This document shows, piece after piece, positions 17,126 through 35,449 of a DNA stretch of 64,000 nt (within the stretch, counting starts at the first letter, position 1; every line of letters starts with the position of its first letter). Made by a program: the position numbers and the translations under genes. Origin of the DNA: Hyalangium minutum (GTDB lineage Bacteria; Myxococcota; Myxococcia; Myxococcales; Myxococcaceae); the NCBI RefSeq assembly GCF_000737315.1, contig NZ_JMCB01000005.1:310001-374000 (forward strand). Direction: 5' to 3'. The notes below the pieces were generated by a model that did no database searches, was not told where the DNA came from, and worked only from the letters and a program-made list of their open reading frames with translations.

Positions 17126-17812
17126 TTACTCCAGCGTGGCCCAGAGGTCATCGAAGGCGCGGCAGAAGGGCTGGACGAGGCGCGGGTCATCCGACACCAG
17201 TACGTTCTCGTGGTTCACATCGGCGGCGGAGCGGGTCCAGTTGTAGCTGCCGGTGAGCAGGCGCAGCCGGTCGAAGACGGCGAACTTGTGGTGCATGTGG
17301 GATGGAGCGTGGTCCAGGCGGACGGGGATGCCCGCGTCGCGCAGGCGCTGGAGGTCCGAGCCCGGGTCGAGCGCCTTGTCGTCGTCGCTCAGCACCCGGA
17401 CCCGGATGCCGCGCTGGTGGGCGTTCACCAGGGCTCGGGCCAGGCGGTCATCTGTCACGGTGAAGACACACACATCGATGGAGCCCCGGGCCTCCTCGAT
17501 GAGCTTGACGATGGCGCGCAGGGGTCCGTCGCCAGGGGAGAAGTGGGCCTCGGTGCGAGAGGCCTCGGGGACTCGGCGGGTGGGGAGCAGGGCCTGGATG
17601 GCCTCTTCGAGCCAGGAGATGACTTCCCGAGCGCGTGGGTCGGTGACGGACTCCCGGGCGAGGGCAAAGGCGCGGGAGCGGAACAGGGCGAGCACGGCCT
17701 CGCTTGCCCGCCTGTCATCGAGGACGGCCTGGAGAGCCTTGCGCTCCGAGCGGGTGAGCTGGCGGTCCGCCAGGGTGGCCGTGAGGATGGCGTCGATCTC
17801 GGAGGTGTCCAT
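17126..17812 (-). CDS. Single-HKD phospholipase D/nuclease-family protein
   Basis: FSPGDG, IDVCVFTVTD, HMHHKFAVFD..LLTGSYNWT..A...N.EN; start MDTSEID inside ORF 17126..18613. Confidence 0.88.
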   Translation of the reverse strand: MDTSEIDAILTATLADRQLTRSERKALQAVLDDRRASEAVLALFRSRAFALARESVTDPRAREVISWLEEAIQALLPTRRVPEASRTEAHFSPGDGPLRAIVKLIEEARGSIDVCVFTVTDDRLARALVNAHQRGIRVRVLSDDDKALDPGSDLQRLRDAGIPVRLDHAPSHMHHKFAVFDRLRLLTGSYNWTRSAADVNHENVLVSDDPRLVQPFCRAFDDLWATLE

Positions 17813-17914
17813 GGGGTTCCCAGCGGGGCGCAGGGGGGCCGATCGTAACGCAGCGCACGCTCTGGAAAGAACAGGCGAGCATGCGGGACGGAGGGGGATT
17901 AGGGTAGGGGAGCC

Positions 17915-18517
17915 ATGAACATCCCCTTCGTCATCGAGACTACGCACCGCGGCGAGCGGGCGTATGACCTCTACAGCCGGCTCCTGAAGGACCGGATCAT
18001 CATCCTGGGTACGCCGATCAACGATGAGGTGGCCAACGTCATCGTGGCGCAGATGCTGTTCCTGGAGTCTGAGGACCCGGACAAGGGCATCAACCTGTAC
18101 ATCAACTCGCCGGGCGGGGTGGTGACAGCGGGCCTGGCCATCTATGACACGATGCAGTACGTGAAGTGCCCGGTGTCGACGATCTGTATTGGGCAGGCGG
18201 CGTCGGCGGCGTCGCTGCTGCTGCTGGCGGGCACGAAGGGCAAGCGCTACGCGCTGCCGAACGCGCGCATCATGATTCACCAGCCGCTCGGCGGGGCGCA
18301 GGGCCAGGCGACGGACATCGACATCCAGGCGAAGGAGATCCTGCGCCTGAAGGCCTACATCAATGGGCTGATGGTGAAGCACACGGGCCACACCATCGAG
18401 CGCATCGAGAAGGATACGGAGCGCGACTACTTCATGAGCGCCGAGGATGCCCGGCAGTACGGCATCATCGACGAGGTGGTGGTGAAGCAGGGCGTGCCGG
18501 TGCCGAACAAGGCATAA
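17915..18517 (+). CDS. clpP: ATP-dependent Clp protease proteolytic subunit
   Basis: [27 protein letters not shown] (catalytic Ser), IMIHQP. Confidence 0.97.
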
Positions 18518-18545
18518 GGCGGTCGGCGTAGGTTCTGCGCGAGCA

Positions 18546-18578
18546 GGAGGGAGGGTGCAGGCTTTGCGCCCTCCTTCT
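18546..18578 (+). terminator. Hairpin downstream of clpP, putative terminator
   Basis: GGAGGGTGCA-GGCTT-TGCGCCCTCC 10-bp stem (one G-T), extendable; no clear U-tract. Confidence 0.45.
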
Positions 18579-18628
18579 GGCGTGCGGGTGGGAGAGGCCG
18601 TGGCACGGCGCATGCTCTACCTTGGAGC

Positions 18629-19128: not shown

Positions 19129-19530
19129 TTAGTCCTCGGCGCCAGTGGCACCCGCGACTTGTCGTTGCTGCCACTCCTTGTAGCTCTCGCCGGACGCTGC
19201 CACCTTCCACATGTCTCGTCCGTTCACGCTCGTCCCCGCAACGGCAACGGCCGCCGCTGTCGGTGAGCGGTGGAGCCGTTCTGGATGATGAACGAGCCCT
19301 TCTCCAGAAGTCTTTCTTCGAATCGTGGTTCTTGAGGCGAGCCCAGACGTCGTCCGCCTCTCCGACGTAGACCGTTGTCTCGAACGATCGATCCTCCGAA
19401 GGACCCACCAGCACATAGATCCCGGTGTTCTGGATCTCCTCACGTTTGCCAAGCCGATCGAGTTCCATGCGCGGAGCTACCAGCACCTGCCCCGTCCACA
19501 TCCCCACCTCAGCAGTGCGGAGTCCCTGCA
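19129..19530 (-). pseudogene. Internally deleted, frameshifted GIY-YIG nuclease-DUF4357 gene remnant
   Basis: One frame gives GLRTAEVGMWTGQVLVAPR..TGIYVLVG..VYVGEADDVWARLKNHDSKKDFW (GIY-YIG N-terminus). A second frame gives SPTAAAVAVAGTSVNGRDMWK (DUF4357 C-terminus) almost immediately after it. The middle of the gene is missing. Confidence 0.65.
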
Positions 19531-19681
19531 GCGCAACCGAAGAACCTACTGGCAGCGCGTCAGCGAGACACTCGCTTTCTGCTACCCAGCCTCTCGGATC
19601 CTCCATGCGCAAGCCGGGACTTCCGGAATGTCAGCGGGTGCGGCTAGGCTCCTGCTCGTTCGCCTGGAGGGGTTTACCGGC

Positions 19682-21106
19682 ATGGCTGATCAGCTGACGT
19701 ACCTGGAGCTTTCGGAAGACGGCGGTAGCTCGCACAAGTTCTACGAAGTCAAAGTGGAAGGAAAGAAGCTCTCCATCCGCTTCGGCCGCATCGGGGACTC
19801 CGGTCAGCTCAAGGTCACCGACTTCCCCAGCGCCGACAAGGCCCTCGCCGAAGCCCAGAAGAAGATCGCCGAGAAGACCAAGAAGGGCTACGCCCCCGCC
19901 GTCATGGGCGCCCGCAAGAAGCGCTCCATCACCCGCCGCGAGATCACCAGCGGTAGCTCTACCGCCAAGCAGTCTCCCATCCTCTGGAAGTTTGGCACCG
20001 GCGAGCGCGCCTTCGGCATCTTCGTCGACGACGCCCGCTGCTGGGTCGGTAACGAGAGCGGCAACATCTACTCGCTCAGCCACGACGGCAAGGTCCTCAA
20101 CCAGTTCCGTCTCCCCGACGGCGTCAAGTGCATCGTCGCCGATGACCGCTGGCTGTACGCCGGCTGCGATGACGGCAACGTGTACGATCTCAGTGGCAAG
20201 GTGCCTCGCAAGGCCTACGAGATCGCCGAAGACGTCGACATCTTCTGGCTCGACATCAAGGATGCCGTGCTCGGCGTCTCCGACGCCAACGGCAAGCTCA
20301 CCGCCATCAACCACGAGGATGAGTCCGTCTGGTCCCGCCAGAGCAAGGGAACCCACGCGTGGATGGTCCGCTGCGATGAGGTCGGCATGTACCACGGCCA
20401 CGCCAAGGGCGTGACCATGTACGACTGGGAGGACGGCAGCGAGATCTGGTCCAAGCCTACTCAGGGCCACGTCATGTTCGGCTGGCAGGAGGAATCCTCC
20501 ATCTACGCCTGCACCAACACCGGCTATGTCCACCGCTTCTCCAAGAAGGGGGACGTGGGGCCTGTCATGAAGTGTGACGCGGCCGTGTTCTCGTGCGCCG
20601 CCGTGGAGGATGGGAAGTACGTCTTCGCGGGCGACAACATGTCCAGCATCTACTGCTTCAATGACAAGGGCGAGCGCCTGTGGAAGCTGTCCACCGGCTG
20701 CGGCTCCGCCTTCTCCATGCAGTTCTTCAAGGACCGGCTCTACCTCGTCACCACCGACGGCTCCCTGGCCTGCATCGATGCCAGCGAGGCCGCCATCCAG
20801 GCCGCCCAGAAGGGCTCTGTTCCCAAGCCCGTCACCGTCAAGGCTCCCAAGCCGCTCGCCGCCGCTCAGGTCGGCACGGTGGAAACCACCCGCAGCGCGG
20901 GCTCGGGCGTCATCGTCGAGTGCTACGAGGACGGTGGCCACGTGCGCGTGCGTGTCACCTCCTCGGGGTACAACAAGAACTGGCACGTGCAGTTCCCCAA
21001 GGACATCCGCGAGGCGGGCTCCCGCTTCGTCGTCGAGGGCGTGCGTGAGTCCGCGCGCGGCGGTTTCTACCGCGCCTACGGTGACATCAAGAAGCTGGTG
21101 AGCTGA
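19682..21106 (+). CDS. WGR domain + beta-propeller protein (retron-associated)
   Basis: YLELSEDGGSSHKFYEV..IRFGRIGDSGQ (WGR); repeated W-K/S blade motifs with GN/GC-x-G; small C-terminal domain. ATG 19682 inside ORF 19325. Confidence 0.88.
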   Translation: MADQLTYLELSEDGGSSHKFYEVKVEGKKLSIRFGRIGDSGQLKVTDFPSADKALAEAQKKIAEKTKKGYAPAVMGARKKRSITRREITSGSSTAKQSPILWKFGTGERAFGIFVDDARCWVGNESGNIYSLSHDGKVLNQFRLPDGVKCIVADDRWLYAGCDDGNVYDLSGKVPRKAYEIAEDVDIFWLDIKDAVLGVSDANGKLTAINHEDESVWSRQSKGTHAWMVRCDEVGMYHGHAKGVTMYDWEDGSEIWSKPTQGHVMFGWQEESSIYACTNTGYVHRFSKKGDVGPVMKCDAAVFSCAAVEDGKYVFAGDNMSSIYCFNDKGERLWKLSTGCGSAFSMQFFKDRLYLVTTDGSLACIDASEAAIQAAQKGSVPKPVTVKAPKPLAAAQVGTVETTRSAGSGVIVECYEDGGHVRVRVTSSGYNKNWHVQFPKDIREAGSRFVVEGVRESARGGFYRAYGDIKKLVS

Positions 21107-21107
21107 C

Positions 21108-24100
21108 GTGAAGCTGATCGAGCAGGTGACCCTGCTCTTCCAGGAAGGGAAGAGCGACAAGGTGTACGAGGTGGACCTGCTCGAAGTGGGTGCAGGCCAG
21201 TACGTCGTCAACTTCCGCTACGGCCGACGCGGCACCGCCCTCAAGGACGGCACCAAGACCCCCGCGCCCGTCTCCATGGCCGAGGCGCGGAAGGCCTACG
21301 ACAAGCTCGTCCAGTCCAAGCTGGACACGGGCTACGTGCGCGCGGGCCACCCGTCTACCGGGCTGCCTCCGCCTGCTCCTCGGCCTGCGGCTCCCACGCC
21401 TGTCGCTGCTGGGGGATCCGCCGCCGCGGCTGCCCCGGGGGCACCGGCTGCACCTCCGGGGGCTTCGGCCCGGGAGCGCATCCTGCTCCAGCAACTCACC
21501 CAGGAGGCCAGCACTCGCCGGTGGTTCCGCTCCACCGAGGTGCGCGCGACGGCTCGTCCCCTGGAACGCGTCATCTGGCGAGTGGGCGAGCTTCGTATCC
21601 GTGCCGCCGAGCCCATCCTGTTGCCCATGTTGGAGCGGGCCACTCCGCTGCGCGCCTACTGCCTCGCCGCGGCGCTCGGGCGGCTGGGCTCGGCGCAATC
21701 CGTGGCGGCGCTCGGGCGGCTCTATGGAGATGCCGGGACGCCGGACATGGTCCGCCGCATCGCCACCGAGGCGCTGCTCCAGCTCTCCGATGAAGCCACC
21801 CGCCGCGAGTTCCGTCAGGACTTGATGGGCAAGCTGCCCCCGGTGCTTCGCGACGCTGCTCAGGCGGGGAATGCGGAACTCTTCGGCCAGGAGCTCGACA
21901 AGCACCTCTCCAGTGGGAAGGACCCGTACGCGGTGCTGGAGACGGTGTACCTGGTGGACTCGGAGGCCGTGCGGCCCGCGCTGCTGCGCGTGCTGCGGAC
22001 CGCTCCCTTCCAGCGCGGTGCCGTGAAGGCCCTGCGCCACGTCTTCAAGATGGCCGAGTACCGCCGCGATGGCGAGGTGTTCGGCATCATCGCCTGGCGC
22101 TATGAGAAGGAGCGCTCCACCAACCGCAGCAGCCGCGACGGCTTCGCCAAGTCCACGCGCCTGTTCCTGCGCCGCCGCATCTGGCGCACCCTGCGGCGGA
22201 TGGGGCAAATCGAGGACTCTGAGTTCGTGAAGATGGCCGTGGGTGTGTTGCTGGCCTTCACCGACGCGGACGCCGTGCCCGAGCTCACCACGAGCACTGG
22301 ATATGGCGCCAGACGCGAGCAGCACTTTTGGGGACCGTTCGCTCCCTACTGGGCCTTCAACCACCTGCTCTACGGGAACAGCCGGTACCTCGAGCCGGTG
22401 GACCACAAGCTCGCCTTCTATTCGAAGTGGAAGCCCTCCTCGCAGCAGGACGTCCGGACTCGCGAGGAGAGCTTCCCCGCGCTGTGGGACCGGACACCTC
22501 AAGGGCTGATGCACCTGCTCGACGAGAGCCGCTGCGCTCCCGTGCACACGTTCGCGGCTCGCGCGCTGCGCTCCCTGCCCGCGTTCCTCGCCCAGCTCGA
22601 CGAGGATGCGGTCGCGATGCTGCTCGAGAAGCCCTATGCGCCCACCGCTCAGCTCGGCTTGGACCTGGCTGTCGAGCGGGTCAATGCGCGCGGGGAGCCT
22701 CGGGCGCTGGTGCTCGCGGCGGCGCGCTCGCCGTACGCGCCTGCCCGTCAGCAGGCCTTCCGGTGGTTGGACGCACTGCGGGAGGTGTTGCTGAAGGACC
22801 TGGGCTTCCTCGCCGCGCTGGCCATCTCTCCGCAGACCGAGACCCGGCAGTATGTGGCCAACATCCTGCGTGGCTCCGTCCTGCCCGATGACGTGGCCGA
22901 GGCGTTCATCCGCCACCTGCTTCAGGCCGCCCGGAAGCTGGGCCCCAATGATGGTCCGCTGGCCGCCGATGTGAAGCAGCTGGTGCTTGCCGCGCTGGGA
23001 CCTCTGGGCAGGCCGCCAGGGACCGAAGTCCTTATAGAGCTGCTTGGCCATCCGCTCGTCGAGATTCAGGAGCTGGGCGGTGAGCTGCTTCTGCGCCGGG
23101 ACCTGCGCACCGAGCCGGTGCCTCCCGAGGTGCTTGGCCACCTGCTGCAGTCCGCGAGTGCCTCGCTGCGCACCCTCGGCCTGCGCTTGCTGGGGAAGAT
23201 GCCGGACGAGGCGTTCCGCGCGAACGAGGCCGTGCTCGGGCGGCTGGCCTCCAGTCCTCACCCGGATGTGCGGCAGGGGATTCGTCCACTGCTCGGGCGG
23301 CTCATCGCCCTGGATGCACAGGCCGGCGCGCGGGTGGTGGAGCTGCTCGTGGCGGCGCTTCTCCGCCGGCGGCTTCCCGAGGGCGTGCCGGAGCACGTCG
23401 CGAGCCTGCTCAGCGGCGAGCTGGCGGCCGCGTTCCACACCGTTCCCGCCGAGACGGTCTGGCGGCTGCTGGACTCCGAGGATGGCACGGCGCAGACCCT
23501 GGGCGGAGAGCTGCTCGAGAAGCGCGGTGATGCGCTGACGGTGGATGTGCCTCGGGCTGTGAAGCTGGCCGGGCATGACGTGCTCAAGGTTCGCGAGTGG
23601 GCTTGGCGCTGGCTCGAGGGTCACGTGGCCGACGTGCGCGCGGATCTGGCCACGGCGGTGCGGCTGCTCGACACGCGCTGGGACGATGCCCGCGCTTTCG
23701 CCTTCCGCTACTTCCGCGACCGCTTCGCCCCCGAGGACTACACCCTGGAGGTGCTCGTCTCCGTGGCGGACAGCGTGCGGCCCGATGTGCAGACCTTCGG
23801 CCGGGAGATGCTGGCGCGCTCGTTCCGCGAGTCGGACGGGCCGGAGCTGCTGCTGCGCCTCTCCGAGCACCCCACGCCCGCCGTGCAGCTCTTCGCCACG
23901 CACTACCTGGACCGCTTCGCAGGCGGTAGCGTGGCCATGGTGGAGAAGCTGGTGCCGTACTTCCATCGCGTGCTGAACCAGGTGAACAAGGGTCGCGCCG
24001 CGCGCAGCCGCGTGCTGGAGTTCCTCCGCAAGGAGGGGCGGCGCGATGAGGTCTCCGGCCGCCATGCCATGGACGTGCTGCACCGATTGTCAGCGACCAT

Positions 24101-24215
24101 TGCTATAGAGAATCGCGCCGCGGCGCTGGAGGCCATGCTCGCCATCGGGAAGGCGCAGCCTGCCGTCCCACTGCCCGTGCGCTTGAAGCCGGTGGAGGTC
24201 CGTCGTGGAGTTTGA
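21108..24215 (+). CDS. WGR domain + HEAT/ARM-repeat protein (retron-associated)
   Basis: LLFQEGKSDKVYEV..VNFRYGRRG (WGR-type), Pro/Ala linker, then about 900 aa of Leu/Ala/Arg-rich helical repeats. GTG start 1 nt after the previous stop. Confidence 0.88.
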   Translation: MKLIEQVTLLFQEGKSDKVYEVDLLEVGAGQYVVNFRYGRRGTALKDGTKTPAPVSMAEARKAYDKLVQSKLDTGYVRAGHPSTGLPPPAPRPAAPTPVAAGGSAAAAAPGAPAAPPGASARERILLQQLTQEASTRRWFRSTEVRATARPLERVIWRVGELRIRAAEPILLPMLERATPLRAYCLAAALGRLGSAQSVAALGRLYGDAGTPDMVRRIATEALLQLSDEATRREFRQDLMGKLPPVLRDAAQAGNAELFGQELDKHLSSGKDPYAVLETVYLVDSEAVRPALLRVLRTAPFQRGAVKALRHVFKMAEYRRDGEVFGIIAWRYEKERSTNRSSRDGFAKSTRLFLRRRIWRTLRRMGQIEDSEFVKMAVGVLLAFTDADAVPELTTSTGYGARREQHFWGPFAPYWAFNHLLYGNSRYLEPVDHKLAFYSKWKPSSQQDVRTREESFPALWDRTPQGLMHLLDESRCAPVHTFAARALRSLPAFLAQLDEDAVAMLLEKPYAPTAQLGLDLAVERVNARGEPRALVLAAARSPYAPARQQAFRWLDALREVLLKDLGFLAALAISPQTETRQYVANILRGSVLPDDVAEAFIRHLLQAARKLGPNDGPLAADVKQLVLAALGPLGRPPGTEVLIELLGHPLVEIQELGGELLLRRDLRTEPVPPEVLGHLLQSASASLRTLGLRLLGKMPDEAFRANEAVLGRLASSPHPDVRQGIRPLLGRLIALDAQAGARVVELLVAALLRRRLPEGVPEHVASLLSGELAAAFHTVPAETVWRLLDSEDGTAQTLGGELLEKRGDALTVDVPRAVKLAGHDVLKVREWAWRWLEGHVADVRADLATAVRLLDTRWDDARAFAFRYFRDRFAPEDYTLEVLVSVADSVRPDVQTFGREMLARSFRESDGPELLLRLSEHPTPAVQLFATHYLDRFAGGSVAMVEKLVPYFHRVLNQVNKGRAARSRVLEFLRKEGRRDEVSGRHAMDVLHRLSATIAIENRAAALEAMLAIGKAQPAVPLPVRLKPVEVRRGV

Positions 24216-25851
24216 GTACGCCTATCGGGGCAACACCGCCGTCGAGCACCGGGGCGACCGCACCGAGCTGTCCTTCTCGCCGGACACCAAGCGCCCTCCC
24301 ACGTACTTCTCCGGCGACCTGCGCCAGAACGTCGCCTTCCGCGAGGCCATCTCCGCCCTGCACAGCGTGGTGGTCTCGGATCTGCGCTTCAAGCCCAAGG
24401 ACAAGACGGCCTACAAGGCCTGGGCCGCCAAGCAGGAGGATGCGGACCTCGACGCCATCTTCGCCCAGCGTCAGCAGGTGGCCAGCCGCCTCAAGGTCCT
24501 GCGCGAGGAGCTAACGGAGCTGGAGCGGCAGAGCGCTCGCCGCATGGGGCCGTTCCTGGAGGCCCGGCGCCGCTACTTCAATTACCTCTACGAGCGGAAC
24601 AAGGACTTCTGGTTCGTGCTCGACCCAGTCATCACCGTTCACCCGGATGAGGCCTTTTTCGAGTGCTTCAGCCAGGACGAGTCCAGCTACGGCCGGCTCG
24701 GTGCCAGCTACGAGGTGTTCCAGAACGTCGGCGAGTTCTCCTGCGGCACCACCAACATCGATTACTCGTCGCCGCTGTATGACGAGTTCCAGAAGATCCG
24801 CTCGTACAAGAAGACGCGCTTCGAGGTGGACCCCACGGGCTTCACCACGAAGACGGGCGAGGACGCCGCCTACAAGGAAGTGAAGATCGACCTGCCGGAC
24901 TCGTGGGTGCGCGGGTTCCTGCAGGTGAACTCGGCCATGAGCCTGCCGGCCACGCGCGTCACCCTGCACCCCATGGACGTGCACAACTTCCTCTTCGTGC
25001 TCAAGCGGCGCAAGGAGAAGAAGGGCCCGCGCTCCATGCGTTACCAACTCAAGCCCGGCCAGCCGGTGAAGGTCCTCTTCGAGCCGTGGAACCTCGAGGT
25101 GACGTGCCCCCGTTCCATTTACGAGGGCGAGGGCTCGCACGACATCCGCGTCTGGGGCCGCCGCCGCCTGCTCATCCTCGAGCGGCTCATTCCCGTGGCC
25201 AAGCGCTTCACCGTGCACCTGCTGGGCAGCGGCATGCCGTCCTTCTATGTCGCGGACCTCGGAGATTTGTCCTTCACCCTCGGGCTCTCCGGGTGGACGG
25301 CGAACGACTGGTCCACCGCGGGCAACTTCGACCTGATGGCCCCTCGCACCGAGGTGGATGAGTTCACCCGGCGCCGCGTCTTCGACGCGCTGAAGGAGAC
25401 GTGGCGCGAGCCGCCGGAGGCGCTGGCTGCGCGGCTCGGGCTGGACCGGGCCACGGTGCTCGGAGCGCTCGGCGCGTACACGCAGGCGGGCCGCGCCATC
25501 TGGGACTTGAACAAGAACGTGTACCGCGCCCGCGAGCTGAGCCGCGAGCCCCTGCCCATGGAGAAGCTGCGGTTCTCCAATGAGCGCGAGGAGAAGGCCA
25601 CGCGCTTCCTCGATGCGAAGGCGGTGATGGTGCAGGCGCAGCCGTCGAATGTGGATGGCTCGCTGGAGCTCAAGGGCACGGTGCGCGAGGCCACCAAGGT
25701 GCAGCGCGCCGCTTTGCGGCTCGATGGGGATCAGCGTATGGTCTCCGCCGAGTGCACCTGCAACTTCTTCCAGCAGAACAAGTTGTTCAAAGGGCCTTGC
25801 GAGCATCTGCTCGCGCTGAGGCTCCAGCACTCGAGGTCCTATCGGACATGA
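24205..25851 (+). CDS. SWIM zinc-finger protein with coiled coil and wHTH-like segment (retron-associated)
   Basis: C-terminal ECTCNFFQQNKLFKGPCEHLLAL (CxCx(n)CxH); overlaps the upstream gene by 11 nt. Confidence 0.88.
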   Translation: MEFEYAYRGNTAVEHRGDRTELSFSPDTKRPPTYFSGDLRQNVAFREAISALHSVVVSDLRFKPKDKTAYKAWAAKQEDADLDAIFAQRQQVASRLKVLREELTELERQSARRMGPFLEARRRYFNYLYERNKDFWFVLDPVITVHPDEAFFECFSQDESSYGRLGASYEVFQNVGEFSCGTTNIDYSSPLYDEFQKIRSYKKTRFEVDPTGFTTKTGEDAAYKEVKIDLPDSWVRGFLQVNSAMSLPATRVTLHPMDVHNFLFVLKRRKEKKGPRSMRYQLKPGQPVKVLFEPWNLEVTCPRSIYEGEGSHDIRVWGRRRLLILERLIPVAKRFTVHLLGSGMPSFYVADLGDLSFTLGLSGWTANDWSTAGNFDLMAPRTEVDEFTRRRVFDALKETWREPPEALAARLGLDRATVLGALGAYTQAGRAIWDLNKNVYRARELSREPLPMEKLRFSNEREEKATRFLDAKAVMVQAQPSNVDGSLELKGTVREATKVQRAALRLDGDQRMVSAECTCNFFQQNKLFKGPCEHLLALRLQHSRSYRT

Positions 25852-26124
25852 AGAGACGGAGGGTTCGCGCACGCGGCGGTCAGAGGGCGGTACCTTGCAA
25901 CCTGGGCGGCGTTTCGCCGTCCTTGCCTGATGGCCTGTGATGCATCACTGGCCCGCTCTTGACTGTGCCGTAGCTCCCTACCCCAGGCGTATGGCGGTGT
26001 GGATTCCGTAAATCCATAGCGCCCGGGGTAGGGGCTACGGCTTGAGTCGAGACGAGCCAGTCCAGAGAGCAGTACGAAGGTGCTCTCGGACCGCTGCGTG
26101 GGCGGACCCTCCCAGCTCTTCATG
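25847..26124 (+). ncRNA. Retron msr-msd non-coding RNA
   Basis: Outer inverted repeat: 25847-25881 CATGAAGAGACGGAGGGTTCGCGCACGCGGCGGTC versus the reverse complement of 26089-26124, CATGAAGAGCTGGGAGGGTCCGCCCACGCAGCGGTC. AG follows the 5' arm (candidate branching G25883). msr hairpin GGGCGGCG-TTT-CGCCGTCC at 25904-25922. Long msd hairpin 25955-26057. Lies directly upstream of a retron RT. Confidence 0.85.
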
Positions 26125-26132
26125 ACAACGTC

Positions 26133-27710
26133 ATGGCCCAACAACCTCCCCGCAACCGGCAGGAGCTGTACGAGCGAATCCAGTCCACCTCCAAGGAGGA
26201 GGTTGTCCTGGAGGAGATGGTGCGGCTGGGCTTCTGGCCCGAGCGCAGCGGCGCTCCGGGAGACCCGCGGGACGAGGTGCATCGCAAGGCGGAGCTGCAG
26301 GCCCAGATTCGCGCGCTGACCACCGAGCAGTCCCGCCTGGGCAACCTGGAGCGGCTGAAGAAGGAGCTGCGCAAGAAGCGGCTCGCCGAGAGCAAGCGCA
26401 AGCAGAAGGAGACGAAGGAGCGCCACGAGCGCGAGCGCGTGGCCCGCGCCGAGGCGTGGAAGGCTCGCAAGGCGAAGGAGATTCTGTTCCTCGGGCGCGG
26501 GGTGTCAGGCGGGCTGAACCAGCGCACCCCGGACGCGGCGAAGCTGGAGCGCCAGGGGCTGCCGAAGCTGGAGACGCCCGAGGTGCTGGCCCAGGCCCTG
26601 GGGCTCACGGTGGGCCAGCTGCGCGGGCTCTCGTACGCGCGGGGCGTATCCACGCGGACGAACTACGTGCGCTTCGCCCTGCCGAAGAAGACGGGCGGCA
26701 TGCGGCTCATCTCCGCGCCGCTGCCTCGGCTGAAGGCGGCGCAGCACTGGGTGCTCGCGAACGTGCTGGAGAAGGTGGCGGTGCACGACGCGGCGCATGG
26801 CTTCCGGGCCGGGCGCTCCATCGTCAGCAACGCGAAGCCGCACGTGGGCGCGGCGGTGGTGGTGAACCTGGACCTGAAGGACTTCTTCCCCACGGTGGTG
26901 TACCCCCGGGTGAAGGGCTTCTTCGTGAAGCTGGGGTACAGCGAGGCGACGGCCACGGCGCTGGCGCTGCTGTGCACCGAGCCGGATGTGGAAGAGGTGG
27001 AGCTGGATGGGCAGCGCTACTTCGTGGCGCAGGGAGGCCGCAGGCTGCCTCAGGGCGCGCCGACTTCTCCGGCGCTGACGAACCTGCTGTGCCGGCGGCT
27101 CGACCGGCGGCTGCTGGGCGCGGCGAAGAAGCTGGGCTTCACGTACACGCGCTACGCGGATGACCTGACGTTCTCCGTGCCCAAGGGTGGTACCGGGGAC
27201 GTGGGGAAGATGCTGCGGCTGGTCCGGTTCGTCGTCCACAAGGAGGGCTTCGTCCCGCATCCCGAGAAGACGCGGGTTCTGCGGCGGGGCGGGCAGCAGG
27301 AGGTGACGGGCGTCGTCGTCAACGACAAGCCCGGCGTGGACCGTGAGACGCTGCGGCGCTTCCGGGCCCTGCTGCACCAGCTCGAGAAGACCGGGCCTGC
27401 GGGCAAGAAGTGGAACGGCTCGACGGACGTCATCGCCTCCGCCGTGGGCTTCGCCAACTACGTGGCCATGGTGGACCCGGTGAAGGGCAAGGTCTTCCAG
27501 GACAAGGCTCGCGCGCTGGAGCTGAAGTACGGGCGCAAGACGGTGATGCCGCCGCGGCCCAAGCCCGGGGCATCTCCGAAGCCGGGGGCGGCGGCGGCAC
27601 CCGCGAGCGCGCCGGTCCCGTCCGGGACAGCCGGGAGCGAGGCGCCGAAGTCCGAGGAGCCTTCGGATCCGAGCGATGCGCCAAAGAAGAAGTGGTGGAA
27701 GCTTTTCTGA
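26133..27710 (+). CDS. Retron-type reverse transcriptase with N-terminal charged coiled-coil extension
   Basis: PKKTGGMRLISAP, HDAAHGF..GRSIVSNA (region X), LDLKDFFP, LPQGAPTSPALTN, YTRYADDLTFS, QEVTGVVVN (retron region-Y VTG). Confidence 0.96.
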   Translation: MAQQPPRNRQELYERIQSTSKEEVVLEEMVRLGFWPERSGAPGDPRDEVHRKAELQAQIRALTTEQSRLGNLERLKKELRKKRLAESKRKQKETKERHERERVARAEAWKARKAKEILFLGRGVSGGLNQRTPDAAKLERQGLPKLETPEVLAQALGLTVGQLRGLSYARGVSTRTNYVRFALPKKTGGMRLISAPLPRLKAAQHWVLANVLEKVAVHDAAHGFRAGRSIVSNAKPHVGAAVVVNLDLKDFFPTVVYPRVKGFFVKLGYSEATATALALLCTEPDVEEVELDGQRYFVAQGGRRLPQGAPTSPALTNLLCRRLDRRLLGAAKKLGFTYTRYADDLTFSVPKGGTGDVGKMLRLVRFVVHKEGFVPHPEKTRVLRRGGQQEVTGVVVNDKPGVDRETLRRFRALLHQLEKTGPAGKKWNGSTDVIASAVGFANYVAMVDPVKGKVFQDKARALELKYGRKTVMPPRPKPGASPKPGAAAAPASAPVPSGTAGSEAPKSEEPSDPSDAPKKKWWKLF

Positions 27711-27735
27711 GCCCGAGCCTTCGAGGAGGGTGAGT

Positions 27736-27984
27736 GTGGACGGTCAGGCGGCGTTGATCTTCGTGGGCGTGGTGGTGGGCGTCGTGGTCCTCGGGCTGCT
27801 GCTCCGAGGCACGGAGGCTCAGCGGCTGCGGCGGGCCTGGTTCCGCAACACGCCCCTGCCCCGGGCCCAAGCCGAGGAGTCGCTCGCGCGCCACCTCATG
27901 GCGAACAAGGAGCGGTTCCCCGGCCGCACCGAAGCTTGGTACCTGAAGAAGATCCTCTCGGACCTCAAGCGCGACCGGCGCTGA
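27736..27984 (+). CDS. Small single-pass membrane protein (about 82 aa)
   Basis: GAGGAGG RBS, GTG start, N-terminal hydrophobic helix, basic helical C-terminus; 25 nt after the RT stop. Confidence 0.7.
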   Translation: MDGQAALIFVGVVVGVVVLGLLLRGTEAQRLRRAWFRNTPLPRAQAEESLARHLMANKERFPGRTEAWYLKKILSDLKRDRR

Positions 27985-28006
27985 CTTCTCCGGCACCCCG
28001 GAGGAG
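27985..28006 (+). terminator. Hairpin closing the retron operon
   Basis: CTTCTCCGG-CACC-CCGGAGGAG 9-bp stem (one G-T) immediately after the stop codon. Confidence 0.45.
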
Positions 28007-28089
28007 CAGCTGCATCAGTTCACCACCCGTGAATGGGAATACTCGGAGCCTCGCGCGGTTTTCCACGGTTCGTTAGCCTCTGAGGAACC

Positions 28090-28713
28090 ATGGACCACCA
28101 CCACCTCGAGTCGCGGATGGAGCTGTTGGAGCGCAGCTACCGGCGCATGCAGGGCGTGGCCCTAGGGGCGCTGGCCCTGGCTGCACTGGGACTGGGCGCC
28201 GCCTTGCTTCGAGGGCAGGGTGGGGCGCTGGAGGTGTCCCGGCTGACACTGACGGATGCGCAGGGGCGCCCGCGCGCCACGCTCGCGGCCGAGGCAGATG
28301 GGAGCACGGGCCTGGTGCTCAATGACGCGGCGGGCAATCCCCGGGCCCTGCTCGGCATCTCCGCGGATGGCTCGCCGAAGCTTCGCTTCTCCACCGCCGA
28401 GGGGCTCGCGCTCGCCGAGCTCACTGTGTACTCGGACGAGGCGCCGCGGCTGGCGTTCGCGAAGAAGGGCGGCGCGGAGTTCTTCGCCGTGGGCATGTTC
28501 CCGGATGGCTCGTCCCGGCTGGAGCTGGCGGACGAGGACGGCCGGCCGCGCGCCATCCTCGGAGCGGACGAGCACGGCTCGCCGGGGTTGCTGCTCGTGG
28601 ACCGGCTGGGGCAGCCCCGGGCACAGCTCCGCGTGTCCCCCTCCAACAGCGCCAGCCTGGTGCTGGAGGGGCACGATGGCGAGGTGTTCCGCGCGCCCTC
28701 CAGCGTGCAGTGA
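28090..28713 (+). CDS. Membrane-anchored hypothetical protein with repeated beta-hairpin motif
   Basis: GAGGA RBS, N-terminal TM helix, repeats of L.D..G.PRA.LG...DG.P.L. Confidence 0.75.
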   Translation: MDHHHLESRMELLERSYRRMQGVALGALALAALGLGAALLRGQGGALEVSRLTLTDAQGRPRATLAAEADGSTGLVLNDAAGNPRALLGISADGSPKLRFSTAEGLALAELTVYSDEAPRLAFAKKGGAEFFAVGMFPDGSSRLELADEDGRPRAILGADEHGSPGLLLVDRLGQPRAQLRVSPSNSASLVLEGHDGEVFRAPSSVQ

Positions 28714-29007: not shown

Positions 29008-30222
29008 CTACTCGTGCGGACGCTCCGCTAAAGGCCGGGAGAATTGCTCTAGGAGTCGTTGAATCTTCTCCCGTTTGGAGCCTCCAATCTTCAGCTGGTG
29101 TTTCGCCAGGGCGGCATCGAGCTGCTTGGAGTCGAGTTCCATCATCAGCGAAATCTCGCTGAATCGAGACTCCCGGAGCAGCTGGACGAGCTGCTCCTTA
29201 GAGCCAGTCACCCGCGATGCGTCGATACTTGAGAGGATGTCCGACAGGTCCTGGCCTCGGAACGAAGCGAAGAGTGTGTCGAAAGCAGGCGTGGACAGGT
29301 GGCGTGGCTCAGGCGGTGGAGGCGGGGGGGCAGCAGGCTTAGGCCGAATGTCGTAACCGAGAGCGAAGAAACGGACTAGGCGAGCAACGAGCTCCTCCTT
29401 GCTGCCCCCCACCCCAAGTTCGACATCCCGGCACACATCGCGAAGCGTCGCGAGCGGCACTGGTGTCAAGACCTCGGTGGGCTGCACGTAGTTGTCCACG
29501 AGCCGCTGAACTTTTTCCTCTTTGGTACCGCTCGTCCGGAGGGCTGCCACTTCTAGGGCTGCACTCACATCGGCTCCCGTCAGGCGCTCGAAGAGCCGTT
29601 TGCGTGCTGCGGCGTCAGCTTCGAGGCCCAGCACCTGCCGAGCAATGGCTACGAGGTCTTCCGGGAAACGGAGTTGGCCGTGCGCGCTATAAACCAGCCC
29701 ACTTGAGCGCAACCCGTTGAGGGCTCCGAGGAATGCATGGTCCGTGTTCCAGAAATGGTGGAAGTCCTCGTGGTGCTCGATGAGGAAATGCTCGGCCTGA
29801 CGAATCTTCAGCTCGCGACGAAGCACCCCCAGGAGCGCGGCTTCGGATGCATCGAGTTCGAGCTCGTTCCGCCGTGCCTCAAGCAGCACGCGCCGGTAGA
29901 CGACAAGCCCGCTATCCCGTCCCAGGATTTCACCATTGGTTACCCGCTGCGCCAAGTCGAGGGTATCGGCAATGACGCTCTCCTTGAGGCCGTCGAGTGG
30001 GAGAGAATAACCCTCCGCATCGAGCAACCGCTCAAGCATTCGGAATGATGGGGGCTGGAGATTGTAGATGGTTTCTCGGACGTACTTCGGGCTGCGGAGC
30101 ACGTTCTCCAAGTTGACGCACACAGTCGCTCGATTCTCCGCCTCTCCCGCTTCAAGATGGTGATGGGCGAGCCTATCGAGCGTCTCTTGATCCAGGCCTG
30201 CGAGGAGTTCCACGAGCCGCAT
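29008..30222 (-). CDS. Hypothetical 404-aa protein with N-terminal helical (TerB-like) region and four SAP-like motifs
   Basis: Motifs LRTSGTKEEKVQRL, LGVGGSKEELVARL, RVTGSKEQLVQLL and LKIGGSKREKIQRL; start MRLVELL inferred inside ORF 29008..30330. Confidence 0.75.
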   Translation of the reverse strand: MRLVELLAGLDQETLDRLAHHHLEAGEAENRATVCVNLENVLRSPKYVRETIYNLQPPSFRMLERLLDAEGYSLPLDGLKESVIADTLDLAQRVTNGEILGRDSGLVVYRRVLLEARRNELELDASEAALLGVLRRELKIRQAEHFLIEHHEDFHHFWNTDHAFLGALNGLRSSGLVYSAHGQLRFPEDLVAIARQVLGLEADAAARKRLFERLTGADVSAALEVAALRTSGTKEEKVQRLVDNYVQPTEVLTPVPLATLRDVCRDVELGVGGSKEELVARLVRFFALGYDIRPKPAAPPPPPPEPRHLSTPAFDTLFASFRGQDLSDILSSIDASRVTGSKEQLVQLLRESRFSEISLMMELDSKQLDAALAKHQLKIGGSKREKIQRLLEQFSRPLAERPHE

Positions 30223-30232
30223 AGCGCCATTC

Positions 30233-31219
30233 TCACATGATTTCCGCGAGTGCCGTGAGACCAAAGCGCCAAAGTGTCGAGGCCAACGTGGCACCCTCCA
30301 GTTGCGGAGTACCGTGCAGGTGAATGACATACCGGACCGACGACACTCCGGGGTCGACCGTACGGATGCGCGGCACCGTCGCGAGAGCGAAGGCCATCGG
30401 AGGAATCAATAACCGGTATCGAGTTGAGGCTGCATCCAGAGTCGCAAGCGACAGACTGTGTCGCGCGAGAGCCTCAAGAAGCGGCGTCGCATCGGGAAGG
30501 CGGGCAAGGAGCGACTTTGCAAGGCTGGCTACGCTCTGCCCCGTGGCGCTGCGCTCTGCCGCGAGCGAAAGGAGGATGCCGGAACCGTCTTGGGGAGCCA
30601 CCTGGGTGAGCGACACATGGTGTACACCAGGGTGGCGCGAAGCCTTCACCTCTAACCGTGCCTCTTCGACGAAGAAGTCGTACGTCCCGCCATCGCTCCC
30701 CTGCCAGCCTCGCACGAGGACGTCCGGGTCAGCGCTCTGGCTGATGGTCCACAACTCGCCCCACAAGCCGAGTTCCTCCGCCTCCGAGAGGCGAGCAGCT
30801 GGCGCGAAGAGGCTGCTCCATCGCTGGAGCAGCGAAACGACCATCGCCGCCGTCGGTGCCGGAGTGGATGCGAGCGCGTTGCCCAACTCGACTCCAAGCG
30901 GAGCAAAGACGTCCAAGAGGTGTTCGTCCAAGCAGGCAACGGCAATAGCGCTCGCAGAAAACTGTGCACCGTCCACGTCGAAGTCCACAGCGGGATATTC
31001 CTGCACCCGGAGCGCACGGGTAGAGAAACCTGCCGTGGCATGGCCATGCACCCCCGTAACAAGGAGAGTGGTATCACGCTGCGGGCTGAGCGTCACAAGC
31101 AGCTTGGCGTGTCCGGCCACAAGCTCACCGACGACTTTGTAGGTCTTCTCGTCCGGGTTCGGCTCAGCCATGGCGGCGGTTGCGAGTAGACGACGCAAGT
31201 CGGAGGCAGACCATTTCAT
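30233..31219 (-). CDS. PD-(D/E)XK motif protein (DUF4420-like nuclease)
   Basis: ELGLWGELW, WQGSDGGTYDF..LEVKAS; overlaps the Z1 gene stop by 4 nt. Confidence 0.85.
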   Translation of the reverse strand: MKWSASDLRRLLATAAMAEPNPDEKTYKVVGELVAGHAKLLVTLSPQRDTTLLVTGVHGHATAGFSTRALRVQEYPAVDFDVDGAQFSASAIAVACLDEHLLDVFAPLGVELGNALASTPAPTAAMVVSLLQRWSSLFAPAARLSEAEELGLWGELWTISQSADPDVLVRGWQGSDGGTYDFFVEEARLEVKASRHPGVHHVSLTQVAPQDGSGILLSLAAERSATGQSVASLAKSLLARLPDATPLLEALARHSLSLATLDAASTRYRLLIPPMAFALATVPRIRTVDPGVSSVRYVIHLHGTPQLEGATLASTLWRFGLTALAEIM

Positions 31220-33456
31220 TCAACGGGTCCGGCGTCGGCGCTTGCGTCGTTGAAGACGTGAGCAGGCAGATCGGCTCGCATGGGTAGGACAAGCTCCGGG
31301 AAGATGTACGGGAAGTCGATGTTGACTTCGACCGTTTGCCCGATTCGCTTCAGTTGCCCCGAATCGTCTTTGAAGACGCAGAGGACGGGACGCCCGGCAG
31401 CGCGCAGCGCCTGGAGCTCCGTCCCCCCGACCATGCCTTCGGTCAAACTCGTGCGCTTTGCGGTACGTGCGTACAGATAACCTTGGTTTGCGAAGAGCGC
31501 CGAGGAGCTTTGCAGGACACTCTTGATTGCCTCAGGGTCCCACTGCCCCGTACCCAGATTGTCGTAAGGGAGGTAGCCCAGCGCCTCGATGATCTCCGCG
31601 AGCGACACGGGGTGGAGCGCATCCCGCTTGATCGGTCCGAACTTCCCACCGGGGAACAGCTTCTCGACCTTTTCGAGGGCCTTTTTGTGCTCCGCAGCAG
31701 CCGGCTTCGGCTGGAAGAGAGGCGCCGCTGGGTAGAGGTGCTCGCCCGGCATGTAGGCTACGACGTGTGACGTATCGAGGACGCTGGTTCGTGTTGCCCG
31801 CAGTTTGCGCGCGACTTGTACCGGAACTTGAGCAGGGGAGCCGTTCGTCCCGAGAAGGTTGCGCAGCCGGTGCTCGGCCGTGCAAATCTGGTGGAAGCGT
31901 AGGGCCTGGAGCTCAGGAATGTACACGCGGAGGAAAGACTTAGCCGACTCCCGGTAGCCGAACATGCGCGCGTGCTGGAGCATCGTGTCCATCTGGGCGA
32001 TCTTCGCGGAGCGCAGGTAGTAGGTGACGAGCAGATTGTCGATCGTCAGGCCACGGCCCAGGATGTTCCCGCCAACGATGAAGTTGAGCTTCGGCCCGAA
32101 ATTGGCGTCGTCCTGCTCCGAGTTGACGACCTTCACCTCTCGGTTGCGAAGACGCTGCCGCACGTACTCCTCGACGGTTTCCAACTTCGGAAGGGAGGTG
32201 ACGCTGCGCGACAGCTCCTTGAGCCCTCGCTGCAAACCGATGCGGGCGGTCGTGCGGTCGCCCTTGAGCGACTCGTAGACCTCCATGAGCAGCTCGCGTA
32301 CGCGTTTCGCCGCCACCTCGTGGTCGTCTTTCTTGACGCTCGTGTGACAGAGGTAACTCTGCGGGCCGAGCTTCGACTTCGGGTCGGCGAGTCCCTGCGC
32401 AGCAGTTGCGACCAGGAAGTAGTACAGGGAGTTGCGCAGGCCATCGGGCGTCTCTCCCCCGGTGAGACTGTCGCCCTCGTTAGCCGCAATATAGACCAAC
32501 GGGGCTGCACCTTCATCGATGACGTTCTTGGGGAAGAAGAACTCCCCACCCGTGTACCCCTGCCCCGGCTCAAGCACTTCAGTGAACAGGGGTCGAAGCG
32601 GGCTATCCGTGTTCTGGAGGAGCAGGGCGTACGGCGTCGCGGTCACTTGGAGGTATAGGTGGTGGCGAAGCGTCTGACGGATCGAGAAGCCCTCCTCCCC
32701 TTCACGGTCGTTGACGTTCGTTTTCGAGAAGATCGCGCTCGGGACTGCACTGGGCGCAGGAGCCTTGCCCTTTGCGCGCGCACGCGACCGGGCGGCAACA
32801 CTCGTGTCGAGCGACGCCTGATCGGCCTCGTCATCGAGGATCAAGGCGGGATGCTCCGAAGCCCCGACCGTCCGTAGGAAATCGACGAACGTCGAGAGGT
32901 GCGAAGTGTTCTTCGCCGTAATCAGGACTAGGCCGGCCTCCGAGAGCGACGCGCGCACGTGGTCGACGTCCGAGATCCACGACCCGATGTCCGTCGACTC
33001 CTTCACGACGACACCTTGGAGCACGCCGAAGCGGTCTGCGGTCTGCTTCACCAAGCTGACGTTGTCCGAAGTGAGGACAACGATGACTTTGAAGCCGTTG
33101 TCGATGGCCATAGCGGCAGTGGTGATCATTGCCAGCGTCTTGCCGCTCTGGACTCGGCCGTAGAGCAGTCCCGTCGGACAACCCTCCTTGAGCGGAGCCT
33201 GTTCCGTCGCGAGCCCCGTGCCACTCGGGCCGACCTCTCCAGATGCGACGTTGGCCGCGTAGTTCCGTAGGATCGATGTCATGAGTCGCGTCACCTGCTC
33301 CTTGACGCGCTCCAGGGTCGCCGGAGTCATGGGTGACGACTTGCCAATTCCCGCCGCAAGTGCTCCCAGGGTGTCCGACAGCACGGGACCGTCGATACGT
33401 GGCACGAGCGTTGGCGCTCCTGCCCCGACCTTGGCAGTACCAATCTCTCCACTCAC
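31216..33456 (-). CDS. Z1-domain protein with SF2 helicase-like N-terminus
   Basis: GRVQSGKT (Walker A), LILDDEADQAS, VTATP, VGGNILGRGLTIDNL, DTMLQHARMFGYR; GAGGAGG RBS and GTG start. Confidence 0.9.
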   Translation of the reverse strand: MSGEIGTAKVGAGAPTLVPRIDGPVLSDTLGALAAGIGKSSPMTPATLERVKEQVTRLMTSILRNYAANVASGEVGPSGTGLATEQAPLKEGCPTGLLYGRVQSGKTLAMITTAAMAIDNGFKVIVVLTSDNVSLVKQTADRFGVLQGVVVKESTDIGSWISDVDHVRASLSEAGLVLITAKNTSHLSTFVDFLRTVGASEHPALILDDEADQASLDTSVAARSRARAKGKAPAPSAVPSAIFSKTNVNDREGEEGFSIRQTLRHHLYLQVTATPYALLLQNTDSPLRPLFTEVLEPGQGYTGGEFFFPKNVIDEGAAPLVYIAANEGDSLTGGETPDGLRNSLYYFLVATAAQGLADPKSKLGPQSYLCHTSVKKDDHEVAAKRVRELLMEVYESLKGDRTTARIGLQRGLKELSRSVTSLPKLETVEEYVRQRLRNREVKVVNSEQDDANFGPKLNFIVGGNILGRGLTIDNLLVTYYLRSAKIAQMDTMLQHARMFGYRESAKSFLRVYIPELQALRFHQICTAEHRLRNLLGTNGSPAQVPVQVARKLRATRTSVLDTSHVVAYMPGEHLYPAAPLFQPKPAAAEHKKALEKVEKLFPGGKFGPIKRDALHPVSLAEIIEALGYLPYDNLGTGQWDPEAIKSVLQSSSALFANQGYLYARTAKRTSLTEGMVGGTELQALRAAGRPVLCVFKDDSGQLKRIGQTVEVNIDFPYIFPELVLPMRADLPAHVFNDASADAGPVE

Positions 33457-33742
33457 TGTTCATCCTCCTCAGGTTGGCGGAGCGAGCCGTCATGGCCGAC
33501 CCCCGGCCGTGAAGTCACCATCCTATGCGGGCATGGAGGAACCACCACCCCCCCTTATTGGGGGATGGCGCGCAGGTAGCTCACCTGCTCTGGCAGCGGC
33601 AAGCCACAAGGTCCGTCCGTCCCAAGCAGAATATTACTTGTGGGCAAAACATCCGAGCCGTACGACCTTCCTCTGTGTTGCTCTAGGCAGGAGTATGTCG
33701 GCGGCCTTCGAAGGGGCAGTGACCATCCCACCACCACTGGTG

Positions 33743-34972: not shown

Positions 34973-35409
34973 CGCTTCGTTACACCAGCCTTCACGAACC
35001 GCCGACTGACGGCGTCGGGGGCCCTGAGCTCGCACTGCCATACCACGAAGACCTTGTAACCGAGGCCCCTGAGTGCGCGCGCTTTGCGAGCATCCCGGGC
35101 GCGGTTGTTCGCTAACTTGGTCTTCCAGAACCCCTGGTTTCTCTTCGGCAATGTCGCCAGCGGGCAATTTCGATGGCCGTGCCAGAAGCAGCCGTTCACG
35201 AAGATCGCCCAGCGTGCAGTCTTGTTGGCGATATCGGGCGTCCCGGGAAGATCTCTCGCGCAGAGCCTGAAGCGGGCTCCCGCCTCCCAGAGAAGCCGCC
35301 GAACCGCAAGTTCTGGCTTGGTATCGCGCCGGCGCACGGCCTTCATCCGCTGCGAGATCTTTTCGGAGATCCGACCCGAAAGTTGGCCTTTTGGCGACTG
35401 GTGCGTCAT
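34969..35409 (-). CDS. vsr: Very short patch repair endonuclease
   Basis: MKAVRRRDTKPE, LPGTPDI, FVNGCFWHGH.C, FWKTKL..NRARD, VWQCEL. Confidence 0.95.
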   Translation of the reverse strand: MTHQSPKGQLSGRISEKISQRMKAVRRRDTKPELAVRRLLWEAGARFRLCARDLPGTPDIANKTARWAIFVNGCFWHGHRNCPLATLPKRNQGFWKTKLANNRARDARKARALRGLGYKVFVVWQCELRAPDAVSRRFVKAGVTKR

Positions 35410-35449
35410 GCCGCAAAGATAATGACGGACCGTTCGACTTGCTGAACAA

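Follow-up and report, generated by a model that had tools for sequence, protein, structure and literature searches.

A probable msr-msd RNA gene of a type XIII retron in Hyalangium minutum, from a lineage distinct from Mx162

The closest described relatives of the element reported here are the type XIII retrons (Mestre 2020, PMC7736814), which include Mx162, Sa163, Mx65, and Ne144; all four are listed as experimentally described. The published description of Mx162 gives a CAGC context, a 162-nucleotide (nt) msd, and an 8-nt overlap (PMC6868368), and an extended N terminus has been reported for the reverse transcriptases (RTs) of myxobacterial retrons (PMC6868368). In the literature that we searched, few retron types are spread as broadly as type XIII. 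We analyzed a window of 64,000 nt from Hyalangium minutum (positions 310,001 to 374,000 of contig NZ_JMCB01000005.1; the window means this whole stretch, and its first nucleotide is position 1). An earlier note, made from the sequence alone, had proposed an unannotated retron msr-msd RNA at 25847-26124. We are highly confident that this segment of the + strand is the msr-msd noncoding RNA (ncRNA) gene of a complete type XIII retron, as the RT family, the matches to PADLOC models, and covariation in homologous loci all agree with that proposal. The retron type is already known, and the ncRNA family was described computationally before. The noncoding gene is now placed in an operon that PADLOC and other tools working from proteins would already label as a type XIII retron.

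The architecture of the locus matches type XIII as defined in PMC7736814. As in that type, an RT_XIII protein with an N-terminal extension is encoded downstream of a structured ncRNA, a SWIM/DEDE protein (with a winged helix in the type as described) is encoded upstream of the ncRNA, and a protein with WGR and HEAT/ARM repeats precedes it; the broad phylogenetic spread is also shared. Nothing essential differs: an extra gene for a WGR and beta-propeller protein lies ahead of the operon here and in some relatives. The order of the retron operon is WGR/beta-propeller, WGR-HEAT, SWIM/DEDE, ncRNA, and RT (Table 1).

PADLOC models match three of the proteins over their full length. The RT matches RT_XIII over residues 2-483 (6.5e-187, 620 bits), which places it in RT clade 10, and 47 PADLOC models of retron RTs match it in all. 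Pfam RVT_1 covers residues 184-392, and the motifs NAKPH (an NAxxH motif of region X, at 233), YADD (the catalytic box, at 341), and VTG (of region Y, at 391) are present. In a comparison with the PDB, the RT is closest to the solved structures of two retron RTs, Ec86 (1.4e-42) and Ec67. The WGR-HEAT protein matches WGR_XIII over residues 1-1031 (1135.8 bits) and is of the cluster 216_1 type. The SWIM protein matches SWIM_XIII over its full length (1.1e-236, 784 bits). It has the zinc-finger pattern CxCx12CxH (CTCNFFQQNKLFKGPCEH, residues 517-534) and, beginning at D140, the pattern D-x7-D-x4-E...D...E, which is the DEDE pattern of cluster 114_1; across phyla, its homologs are 53-69% identical. 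The TGA stop codon of the SWIM gene (25849-25851) falls within the 5' arm of the ncRNA, and the ATG of the RT gene is 8 nt downstream of the 3' arm.

As RNA, the segment folds strongly: the minimum free energy of 25840-26135 is -180.8 kcal/mol, compared to -120.5 +/- 4.9 kcal/mol for 200 dinucleotide shuffles (z = -12.2), and none of the 200 shuffles was as good. Every sequence element listed in that note was found, at the same coordinates. The outer inverted repeat, described there as "35/36," is real and includes two G-U pairs (U25865-G26105 and G25875-U26095), but with these counted in, its 5' arm (25847-25882) pairs with 26089-26124 at only 32 of 36 positions. The breaks are an asymmetric 2x3 internal loop (AC at 25856-57 versus CAG at 26113-15) and two mismatches, G-G (25869/26101) and A-G (25882/26088); read without gaps, the repeat has 31 nt at 84% complementarity and another 20 nt at 75%. 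Inward of the arm, the helix continues for 11 more pairs: 25883-88 with 26082-87 and then, past a bulge, 25892-96 with 26077-81, which we call helix P1. The a1/a2 stem (25847-25888 with 26082-26124) is on the same strand as the RT gene and adjoins it. This stem had been called unusually long, but its length is typical of the family: the arm of Mx162 is 34 nt, and the stems of the relatives, as read from their folds, are roughly 13-40 bp. Near its inner end, GAGAGCA (26065-71) is complementary to UGCUCUC (26081-87), and the same pairing is seen as a 5' hairpin when the msd DNA is folded from 26087. To judge from these letters, the 26065-71/26081-87 hairpin could possibly compete with helix P1 and with the outer stem's six innermost pairs (25883-88 with 26082-87) and so act as a conformational switch.

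Evidence for the RNA also comes from its relatives. We scanned one genome per species, which gave 416 stretches encoding relatives of the RT, and kept 80 loci (numbered with an L below). In the kept loci, the RTs are 82-89% identical to the window's RT in Hyalangium, about 73% in Archangium, and 47-62% in many other phyla. In the 300 nt upstream of the RT gene, identity is 90-95% within the Hyalangium group and falls to about 80% for Archangium. We aligned 16 ncRNA sequences from Archangiaceae (alignment A1) and the core of the ncRNA from 67 sequences representing many phyla (alignment A2). On A1, RNAalifold gives the same fold as the single sequence, with 98 pairs, and 24 of these show compensatory changes, which cluster in the msd hairpin and at the outer end of the long stem. 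Helix 1 of A1, in the outer stem, has 34 pairs, nine of them with compensatory changes. Across A1, 97.8% of the cells are paired, versus 41-50% if the partners are slid by 1-3 columns. A2 has 52 consensus pairs, of which 40 are compensatory, and 90.6% of its cells are paired, versus 35-45% after sliding. In neither alignment did any of 500 shuffles reach the observed value. The earlier note had staked its proposal on covariation in homologous loci, and covariation is abundant.

In addition, a hidden Markov model derived from A1 matches the inner 190 nt of the element upstream of the RT gene in nearly all of the loci, irrespective of phylum. The length of the core, from CCUU to AAGG, is nearly constant (184-190 nt). 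In contrast to the core, the sequences of the outer arms are unrelated between lineages, yet they are always complementary. The ncRNA is common to about 60 loci with type XIII synteny, and the gene order WGR-HEAT, SWIM, ncRNA, RT is kept in about 60 loci; the WGR-HEAT gene taken by itself is syntenic in about 50. An open reading frame on the - strand (25839-26426) and others overlap the element; a coding explanation for them is contradicted by the pattern of covariation and by the conserved intergenic position. This ncRNA, deeply conserved across phyla with a core of constant length, is absent from Rfam.

Within the outer stem, the RNA has an msr hairpin (with the stem at 25904-25922) upstream of an msd hairpin, and both show compensatory changes. 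The msr stem had been listed as the DNA sequence GGGCGGCG-TTT-CGCCGTCC; in the family, 99% of its cells are paired, and four of its eight pairs have compensatory changes. The msd stem also stands as it had been described: GCTCTTGACT... (from 25955) pairs with ...AGTCGAGACGAGC (ending at 26057), and TGGATT-CCGTA-AATCCA caps it at 26000-26016. As RNA this apical loop is UGGAUU-CCGUA-AAUCCA, and it is semi-conserved. The msd helices of A2 (helices 4-8) have 37 pairs, and 34 of these are compensatory; folded as DNA, the msd hairpin has an energy of -48.5 kcal/mol (z = -9.7). The palindrome GTGATGCATCAC that had been pointed out at 25937-25948 is present, but it is not kept as a palindrome beyond the closest relatives. 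In the wider family, the conserved motif at this site is GC-(A/T)TCACTGG.

Table 1. Features of the retron locus and its surroundings in the window, and tandem copies of the ncRNA in related loci
Feature	Position	Strand	Basis or remarks
PLD-like (PLDc_2) protein, upstream of retron	17126-18613	-	
WGR + PQQ/BamB-like beta-propeller protein, 593 aa, candidate fourth operon gene	19325..21106	+	Pfam WGR (7.6e-19) and beta-propeller families
WGR + HEAT/ARM-repeat accessory protein, 1035 aa, Mestre cluster 216-type	21108..24215	+	PADLOC WGR_XIII, HEAT-ARM_XIII; Pfam WGR, HEAT_2
SWIM zinc-finger/DEDE-motif protein, 548 aa, putative effector, Mestre cluster 114-type	24205..25851	+	PADLOC SWIM_XIII, Pfam SWIM
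5' arm of outer stem (a1/a2)	25847..25888	+	Fold and covariation; consensus pairing of relatives begins at 25852
3-nt bulge GGU (AGU in most relatives) between outer stem and P1	25889..25891	+	Fold
Helix P1, 5' strand (A)CCUU, pairs with AAGG(U) at 26077-26081	25892..25896	+	95% of cells paired, 67 sequences
msr hairpin; GCA/UGC (25897-99/25924-26) closes GGGCGGCG-UUU-CGCCGUCC (25904-25922)	25897..25926	+	Covariation
Unpaired linker of ~20 nt, with part of palindrome	25927..25946	+	Unpaired in family consensus
msd hairpin, 115 nt; base ACUGGCCCGCUC / GAGACGAGCCAGU conserved, mid-stem variable and covarying	25947..26061	+	Covariation, DNA fold
3' linker CCAGAGAGCAGUACG, ending in conserved ACGAAGG that leads into P1	26062..26076	+	CGAAGG nearly invariant; unpaired in consensus
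P1 3' strand (26077-26081), then 3' arm of outer stem (26082-26124)	26077..26124	+	Fold, covariation
Retron RT, 525 aa, N-terminal extension of ~135-180 residues	26133..27710	+	Pfam RVT_1, PADLOC RT_XIII
Cluster of SAP-domain, DUF4420 (PD-(D/E)XK), and Z1-domain proteins and C-5 cytosine DNA methylase, downstream of retron	29008-35449	-	
Tandem ncRNA copies, L073	7475-7673, 7742-7940		
Tandem ncRNA copies, L030	7459-7659, 7722-7923		
Tandem ncRNA copies, L029	1465-1670, 1797-2001		
Tandem ncRNA copies, L025	1034-1232, 1325-1528		
Tandem ncRNA copies, L045	7376-7575, 7694-7897		
Tandem ncRNA copies, L017	6744-6946, 7045-7247		
Tandem ncRNA copies, L055	2605-2809, 2931-3131		

The arrangement varies among the relatives. 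In several loci, two complete copies of the ncRNA lie in tandem upstream of a single RT gene, each with its own outer stem (Table 1). In L073, both copies score 154-159 bits with a covariance model of the ncRNA family (R1). Tandem copies differ in the sequence of the msd mid-stem, and a single RT would accordingly produce two distinct multicopy single-stranded DNAs (msDNAs). Two other loci, L067 and L071, have the ncRNA about 1.5 kb upstream of the RT gene (at 6249-6451 and 6238-6439), with intervening sequence, and in L030 and L047 the SWIM gene is several kb upstream of the RT gene. Four loci that encode a related RT and have at least 1.4 kb of upstream sequence (L023, L036, L050, and L066) gave no match to R1 at E <= 1. 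In the window itself, R1 has a second match at 35889-36020 (+), with 13 bits; it covers only a GC-rich hairpin (GGGCGGTGATTCGCCGCTC) that resembles the msr stem-loop, and the rest of the model is unmatched, so we treated it as a chance match.

The earlier note had likened the stem elements and a loop of the ncRNA to Mx162. The two do belong to the same family, but of the likened motifs only GGCGTT.CGCC is found in both ncRNAs; GGGTAG occurs in Mx162, and GCCGTAG, CTACGGC, and CTACCC are absent from it. Our comparisons with Mx162 rest on the locus of the Myxococcus xanthus protein P0121 (L081), which was retrieved with an Mx162 RT sequence that served as a query only and to which P0121 is 98% identical. 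The msr-msd region of L081 has a 5' arm of 34 nt (7678-7711), G7712 within CAGC, the msr hairpin GGGAGCGGCGTTGCGCCGCTCC, and a 3' arm at 7925-7958, which agrees with the published description of Mx162 (PMC6868368).

Sequence comparison identifies the window's retron as a paralog of Mx162, rather than its ortholog, and as a member of a widespread WGR_XIII lineage. The window's RT and the Mx162 RT of M. xanthus are 47-48% identical, whereas orthologs among Myxococcaceae and Archangiaceae are 72-85% identical. Separate orthologs of the Mx162 RT, at 72-76% identity, are found in Hyalangium versicolor, H. rubrum, H. minutum, Archangium gephyra, A. lansingense, and Melittangium. Both RT lineages occur on one contig in A. 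lansingense (P0023/P0175) and in A. gephyra (P0024/P0178), and H. rubrum has one match from each lineage (P0009/P0158). In these two-lineage genomes, the RTs orthologous to that of Mx162 have 472-485 amino acids, versus about 520-534 for the lineage of the window. No protein from Myxococcus or Corallococcus is among the 120 best relatives of the window's RT.

The ncRNAs tell the same story. The Mx162-like ncRNA of H. rubrum is 87% identical to its counterpart in M. xanthus, whereas the window's ncRNA has no nhmmer match in the Mx162 loci, and R1 scores just 12.7-12.9 bits on those loci, from the msr hairpin only. Aligning the window's ncRNA to Mx162, as had been suggested, gave a global score of 12.5, which is not above that of shuffles (2.9 +/- 6.4). 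The RT identities, the separate orthologs, and the lack of an ncRNA alignment rule out that the retron is the Mx162 ortholog. The Archangiaceae have two distinct type XIII retrons: an Mx162 ortholog and the WGR-HEAT-linked lineage.

The likeness to Mx162 (Retron-Mxa1) and Sa163 (Retron-Sau1) is one of type and layout: an outer inverted repeat that is very long (34 nt in Mx162), an msr hairpin with GCGGCGTT.CGCCG, a precursor of about 280 nt, a long msd hairpin, and a SWIM-type gene upstream of the ncRNA and the RT gene. Mx162 differs in that its SWIM protein is about 33% identical to that of the window, its msd and linker sequences are unrelated to those of the window's ncRNA, and the G of its CAGC is unpaired at the end of the helix. 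Also, there is no WGR-HEAT homolog in the 8 kb upstream of Mx162, where a protein of more than 2100 amino acids with WD40 repeats (a beta-propeller) is encoded instead.

Ne144 (Retron-Nex2, from Nannocystis exedens) is a type XIII retron with its own ncRNA sub-family name (PMC7736814). Nannocystis genomes have both the ncRNA family and the RT lineage of the window: in four loci (L043, L048, L049, and L057), the RTs are 57-62% identical to the window's RT and the ncRNAs have nhmmer E-values of 1e-24 to 1e-28; the sequences compared are those of these genomes. The 144-nt msDNA of Ne144 would be compatible with the length of the core here and leaves the priming site unfixed. More distantly, Ec86 (Retron-Eco1) shares the fold family of the RT (E = 1.4e-42) and the general msr-msd plan, with inverted repeats at the two termini, a G (here presumed) that primes from the inner end, and a hairpin for the msd. 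Ec86 differs in being a type II-A3 retron with an effector like nucleoside deoxyribosyltransferases, arms of 12-13 nt, an 86-nt msDNA, and an RT without the N-terminal extension.

The position of the branching guanosine in the WGR-HEAT-linked lineage is ambiguous and may be noncanonical. One rival reading, that of the earlier note, takes the element for a close homolog of Mx162 and Sa163, with G25883, directly after the 36-nt a1/a2 arm, as its 2'-OH branch point. We consider this doubtful. The AG at 25882-25883 is there, and the context TCAG|A around G25883 resembles the CAGC of Mx162 and Sa163 and the CAGA of Ec67 (PMC6868368). The spacing is similar too: G25883 is 36 nt from the start of the inverted repeat, which matches the 34-nt arm of Mx162, and 20 nt from the msr hairpin, versus 18 nt in Mx162. 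However, G25883 is paired with C26087 in all 16 of the Archangiaceae sequences, and most Archangium sequences have an A-U pair in place of the A-G mismatch beside it, so that the helix runs through G25883 without a break. In the Hyalangium group, where A25882 faces G26088, bulging of A25882 could let G25883 oppose G26088. The motif CGGYCAG does recur in the 5' arm of several unrelated lineages, but YCAG at a comparable offset is found in only about 8 of the 59 nonredundant family members, versus 43 of 59 in which position -1 or -2 relative to CCUU is a G, mostly in the form AG or AGA. In the Nannocystis loci, the bulge beside CCUU is the sole interruption of the outer stem. Also, orthology to Mx162 has been excluded. 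The family alignment favors the bulged G25890 (or G25889) as the probable branch point: G25890 is invariant in the 16 Archangiaceae sequences and unpaired in all of their folds. The proven branching G of Mx162 is directly followed by CCUG; a P1-like CCUG/CAGG helix in Mx162 showed no covariation between M. xanthus and H. rubrum, and we did not use it as support. Priming from G25890 would make the first templated base about 26081, and priming from G25883 about 26087. The 144-nt length of Ne144, considered together with the Nannocystis loci, did not decide between the two start sites: each agrees with it, given how loosely the stop site is placed.

Two other explanations would do away with retron-type reverse transcription altogether. 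The element might chiefly be a processing or regulatory structure of the operon's mRNA, such as an RNase III site or a stem that sequesters the region before the ATG of the RT gene. RNase III could plausibly cleave a stem of about 40 bp, this one reaches from the SWIM stop codon almost to the RT gene (8 nt short of its start), and our scan of 25400-28300 (for promoters, of the sigma-70 type) found no separate promoter or terminator. But such a role would not need a conserved inner hairpin with a constant length of 115 nt, an msr hairpin shared with Mx162, or tandem copies, and type XIII already counts four retrons listed as experimentally described (PMC7736814). We therefore consider it very improbable that this is the element's main role; roles in processing and in templating are compatible with each other. 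Even harder to credit is that the RNA serves a nonretron mechanism, such as template jumping or untemplated synthesis as in DRT2 or DRT9, and yields no 2'-5' branched msDNA. It is a structured ncRNA directly upstream of a defense-type RT, and there is a weak match to the NCBIfam model for Drt2 (34 bits, versus a cutoff of 390). In contrast, the RT scores 620 bits with RT_XIII, has the retron-specific NAxxH and VTG motifs, and has retron RTs as its closest solved relatives, and the ncRNA shows the hallmarks of a retron: inverted repeats at its termini and hairpins for both msr and msd.

Several points weigh against reading the segment as the msr-msd gene of a complete retron. There is no match to Rfam 15 at gathering thresholds over the whole window, and at E <= 10 over 25600-26400 there is only sub-threshold noise from miRNA-like hairpins, so no curated RNA model is available for checking membership of the ncRNA. 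On the + strand of 25400-28300, neither a sigma-70-type promoter, the only type that the scan covered, nor an intrinsic terminator was found; because myxobacterial promoters may depart from the consensus, a separate promoter for the ncRNA is neither supported nor excluded. The favored branching G, G25890, lacks an unpaired base opposite it on the 3' strand, unlike the opposing G-G of Mx162 and Ec86. Finally, a function in defense is suggested by analogy to other retrons, and we found no demonstrated function for any type XIII retron in the literature that we searched.

If the element is a retron RNA, as we conclude, then it probably works as follows. The ncRNA would be made as part of the operon transcript, because the scan showed neither a terminator nor a sigma-70-like promoter, the SWIM gene stops within the 5' arm, and the RT gene starts 8 nt past the 3' arm; the simplest inference is that the long duplex is processed after cotranscription. 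The ends of the ncRNA form the stem of about 40 bp, as covariation shows, and this would bring a guanosine at its inner end beside the 3' end of the template. To judge from its conservation, the msr hairpin is probably what the RT recognizes. Retron biochemistry then suggests that the RT would prime from the 2'-OH of the inner-end guanosine (with G25890 favored over G25883), copy the template leftwards through the msd hairpin, and stop in the linker at about 25930-25945, while RNase H would remove the copied RNA. By analogy, the linker as a whole (25927-25946) is the likely stop site and also the likely place where the 3' end of the RNA pairs with the 3' end of the DNA: the 8-nt RNA-DNA overlap of Mx162 (PMC6868368), when placed on L081, lies about 11-18 nt past the msr hairpin. 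The product would be a branched, RNA-linked single-stranded DNA of approximately 140-155 nt. By analogy with other retrons, the complex of msDNA and RT presumably keeps both partner proteins (SWIM/DEDE and WGR-HEAT) restrained until a signal, for instance infection by a phage, releases them.

A more speculative idea, which we hold only tentatively, is that the priming G does not stand at a free helix end opposite a G, as in Ec86 and Mx162, but bulges out at the junction of the long outer stem and the conserved CCUU/AAGG helix of 4-5 bp, and that the msDNA acts as a cofactor of fixed form, not as a decoy free to evolve. If so, the 3' strand of the CCUU/AAGG helix would be the first template, and the RT would have to open that helix to start. 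The near-invariant sequence of the core and its constant length across phyla would then imply that the SWIM/DEDE and WGR-HEAT partners recognize the specific sequence of the msDNA base and of the linkers. For experimenters, the model of the ncRNA with explicit candidate priming sites amounts to a concrete construct design.

The WGR/beta-propeller gene stops 1 nt before the start of the WGR-HEAT gene. Its protein had no match among the PADLOC models, and homologs adjoin the retron in every full-length Archangiaceae locus as well as in L022, L023, L044, L045, L052, and L074. In these six loci, their position within the operon varies. Possibly, some type XIII retrons have this protein as a fourth component that has yet to be described.

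The genes on either side of the operon are listed in Table 1. From the downstream cluster, we compared only the SAP-domain open reading frame (29008-30330) to the related loci, and none of them has a homolog of it. Overall, the surroundings of the retron resemble a defense island.

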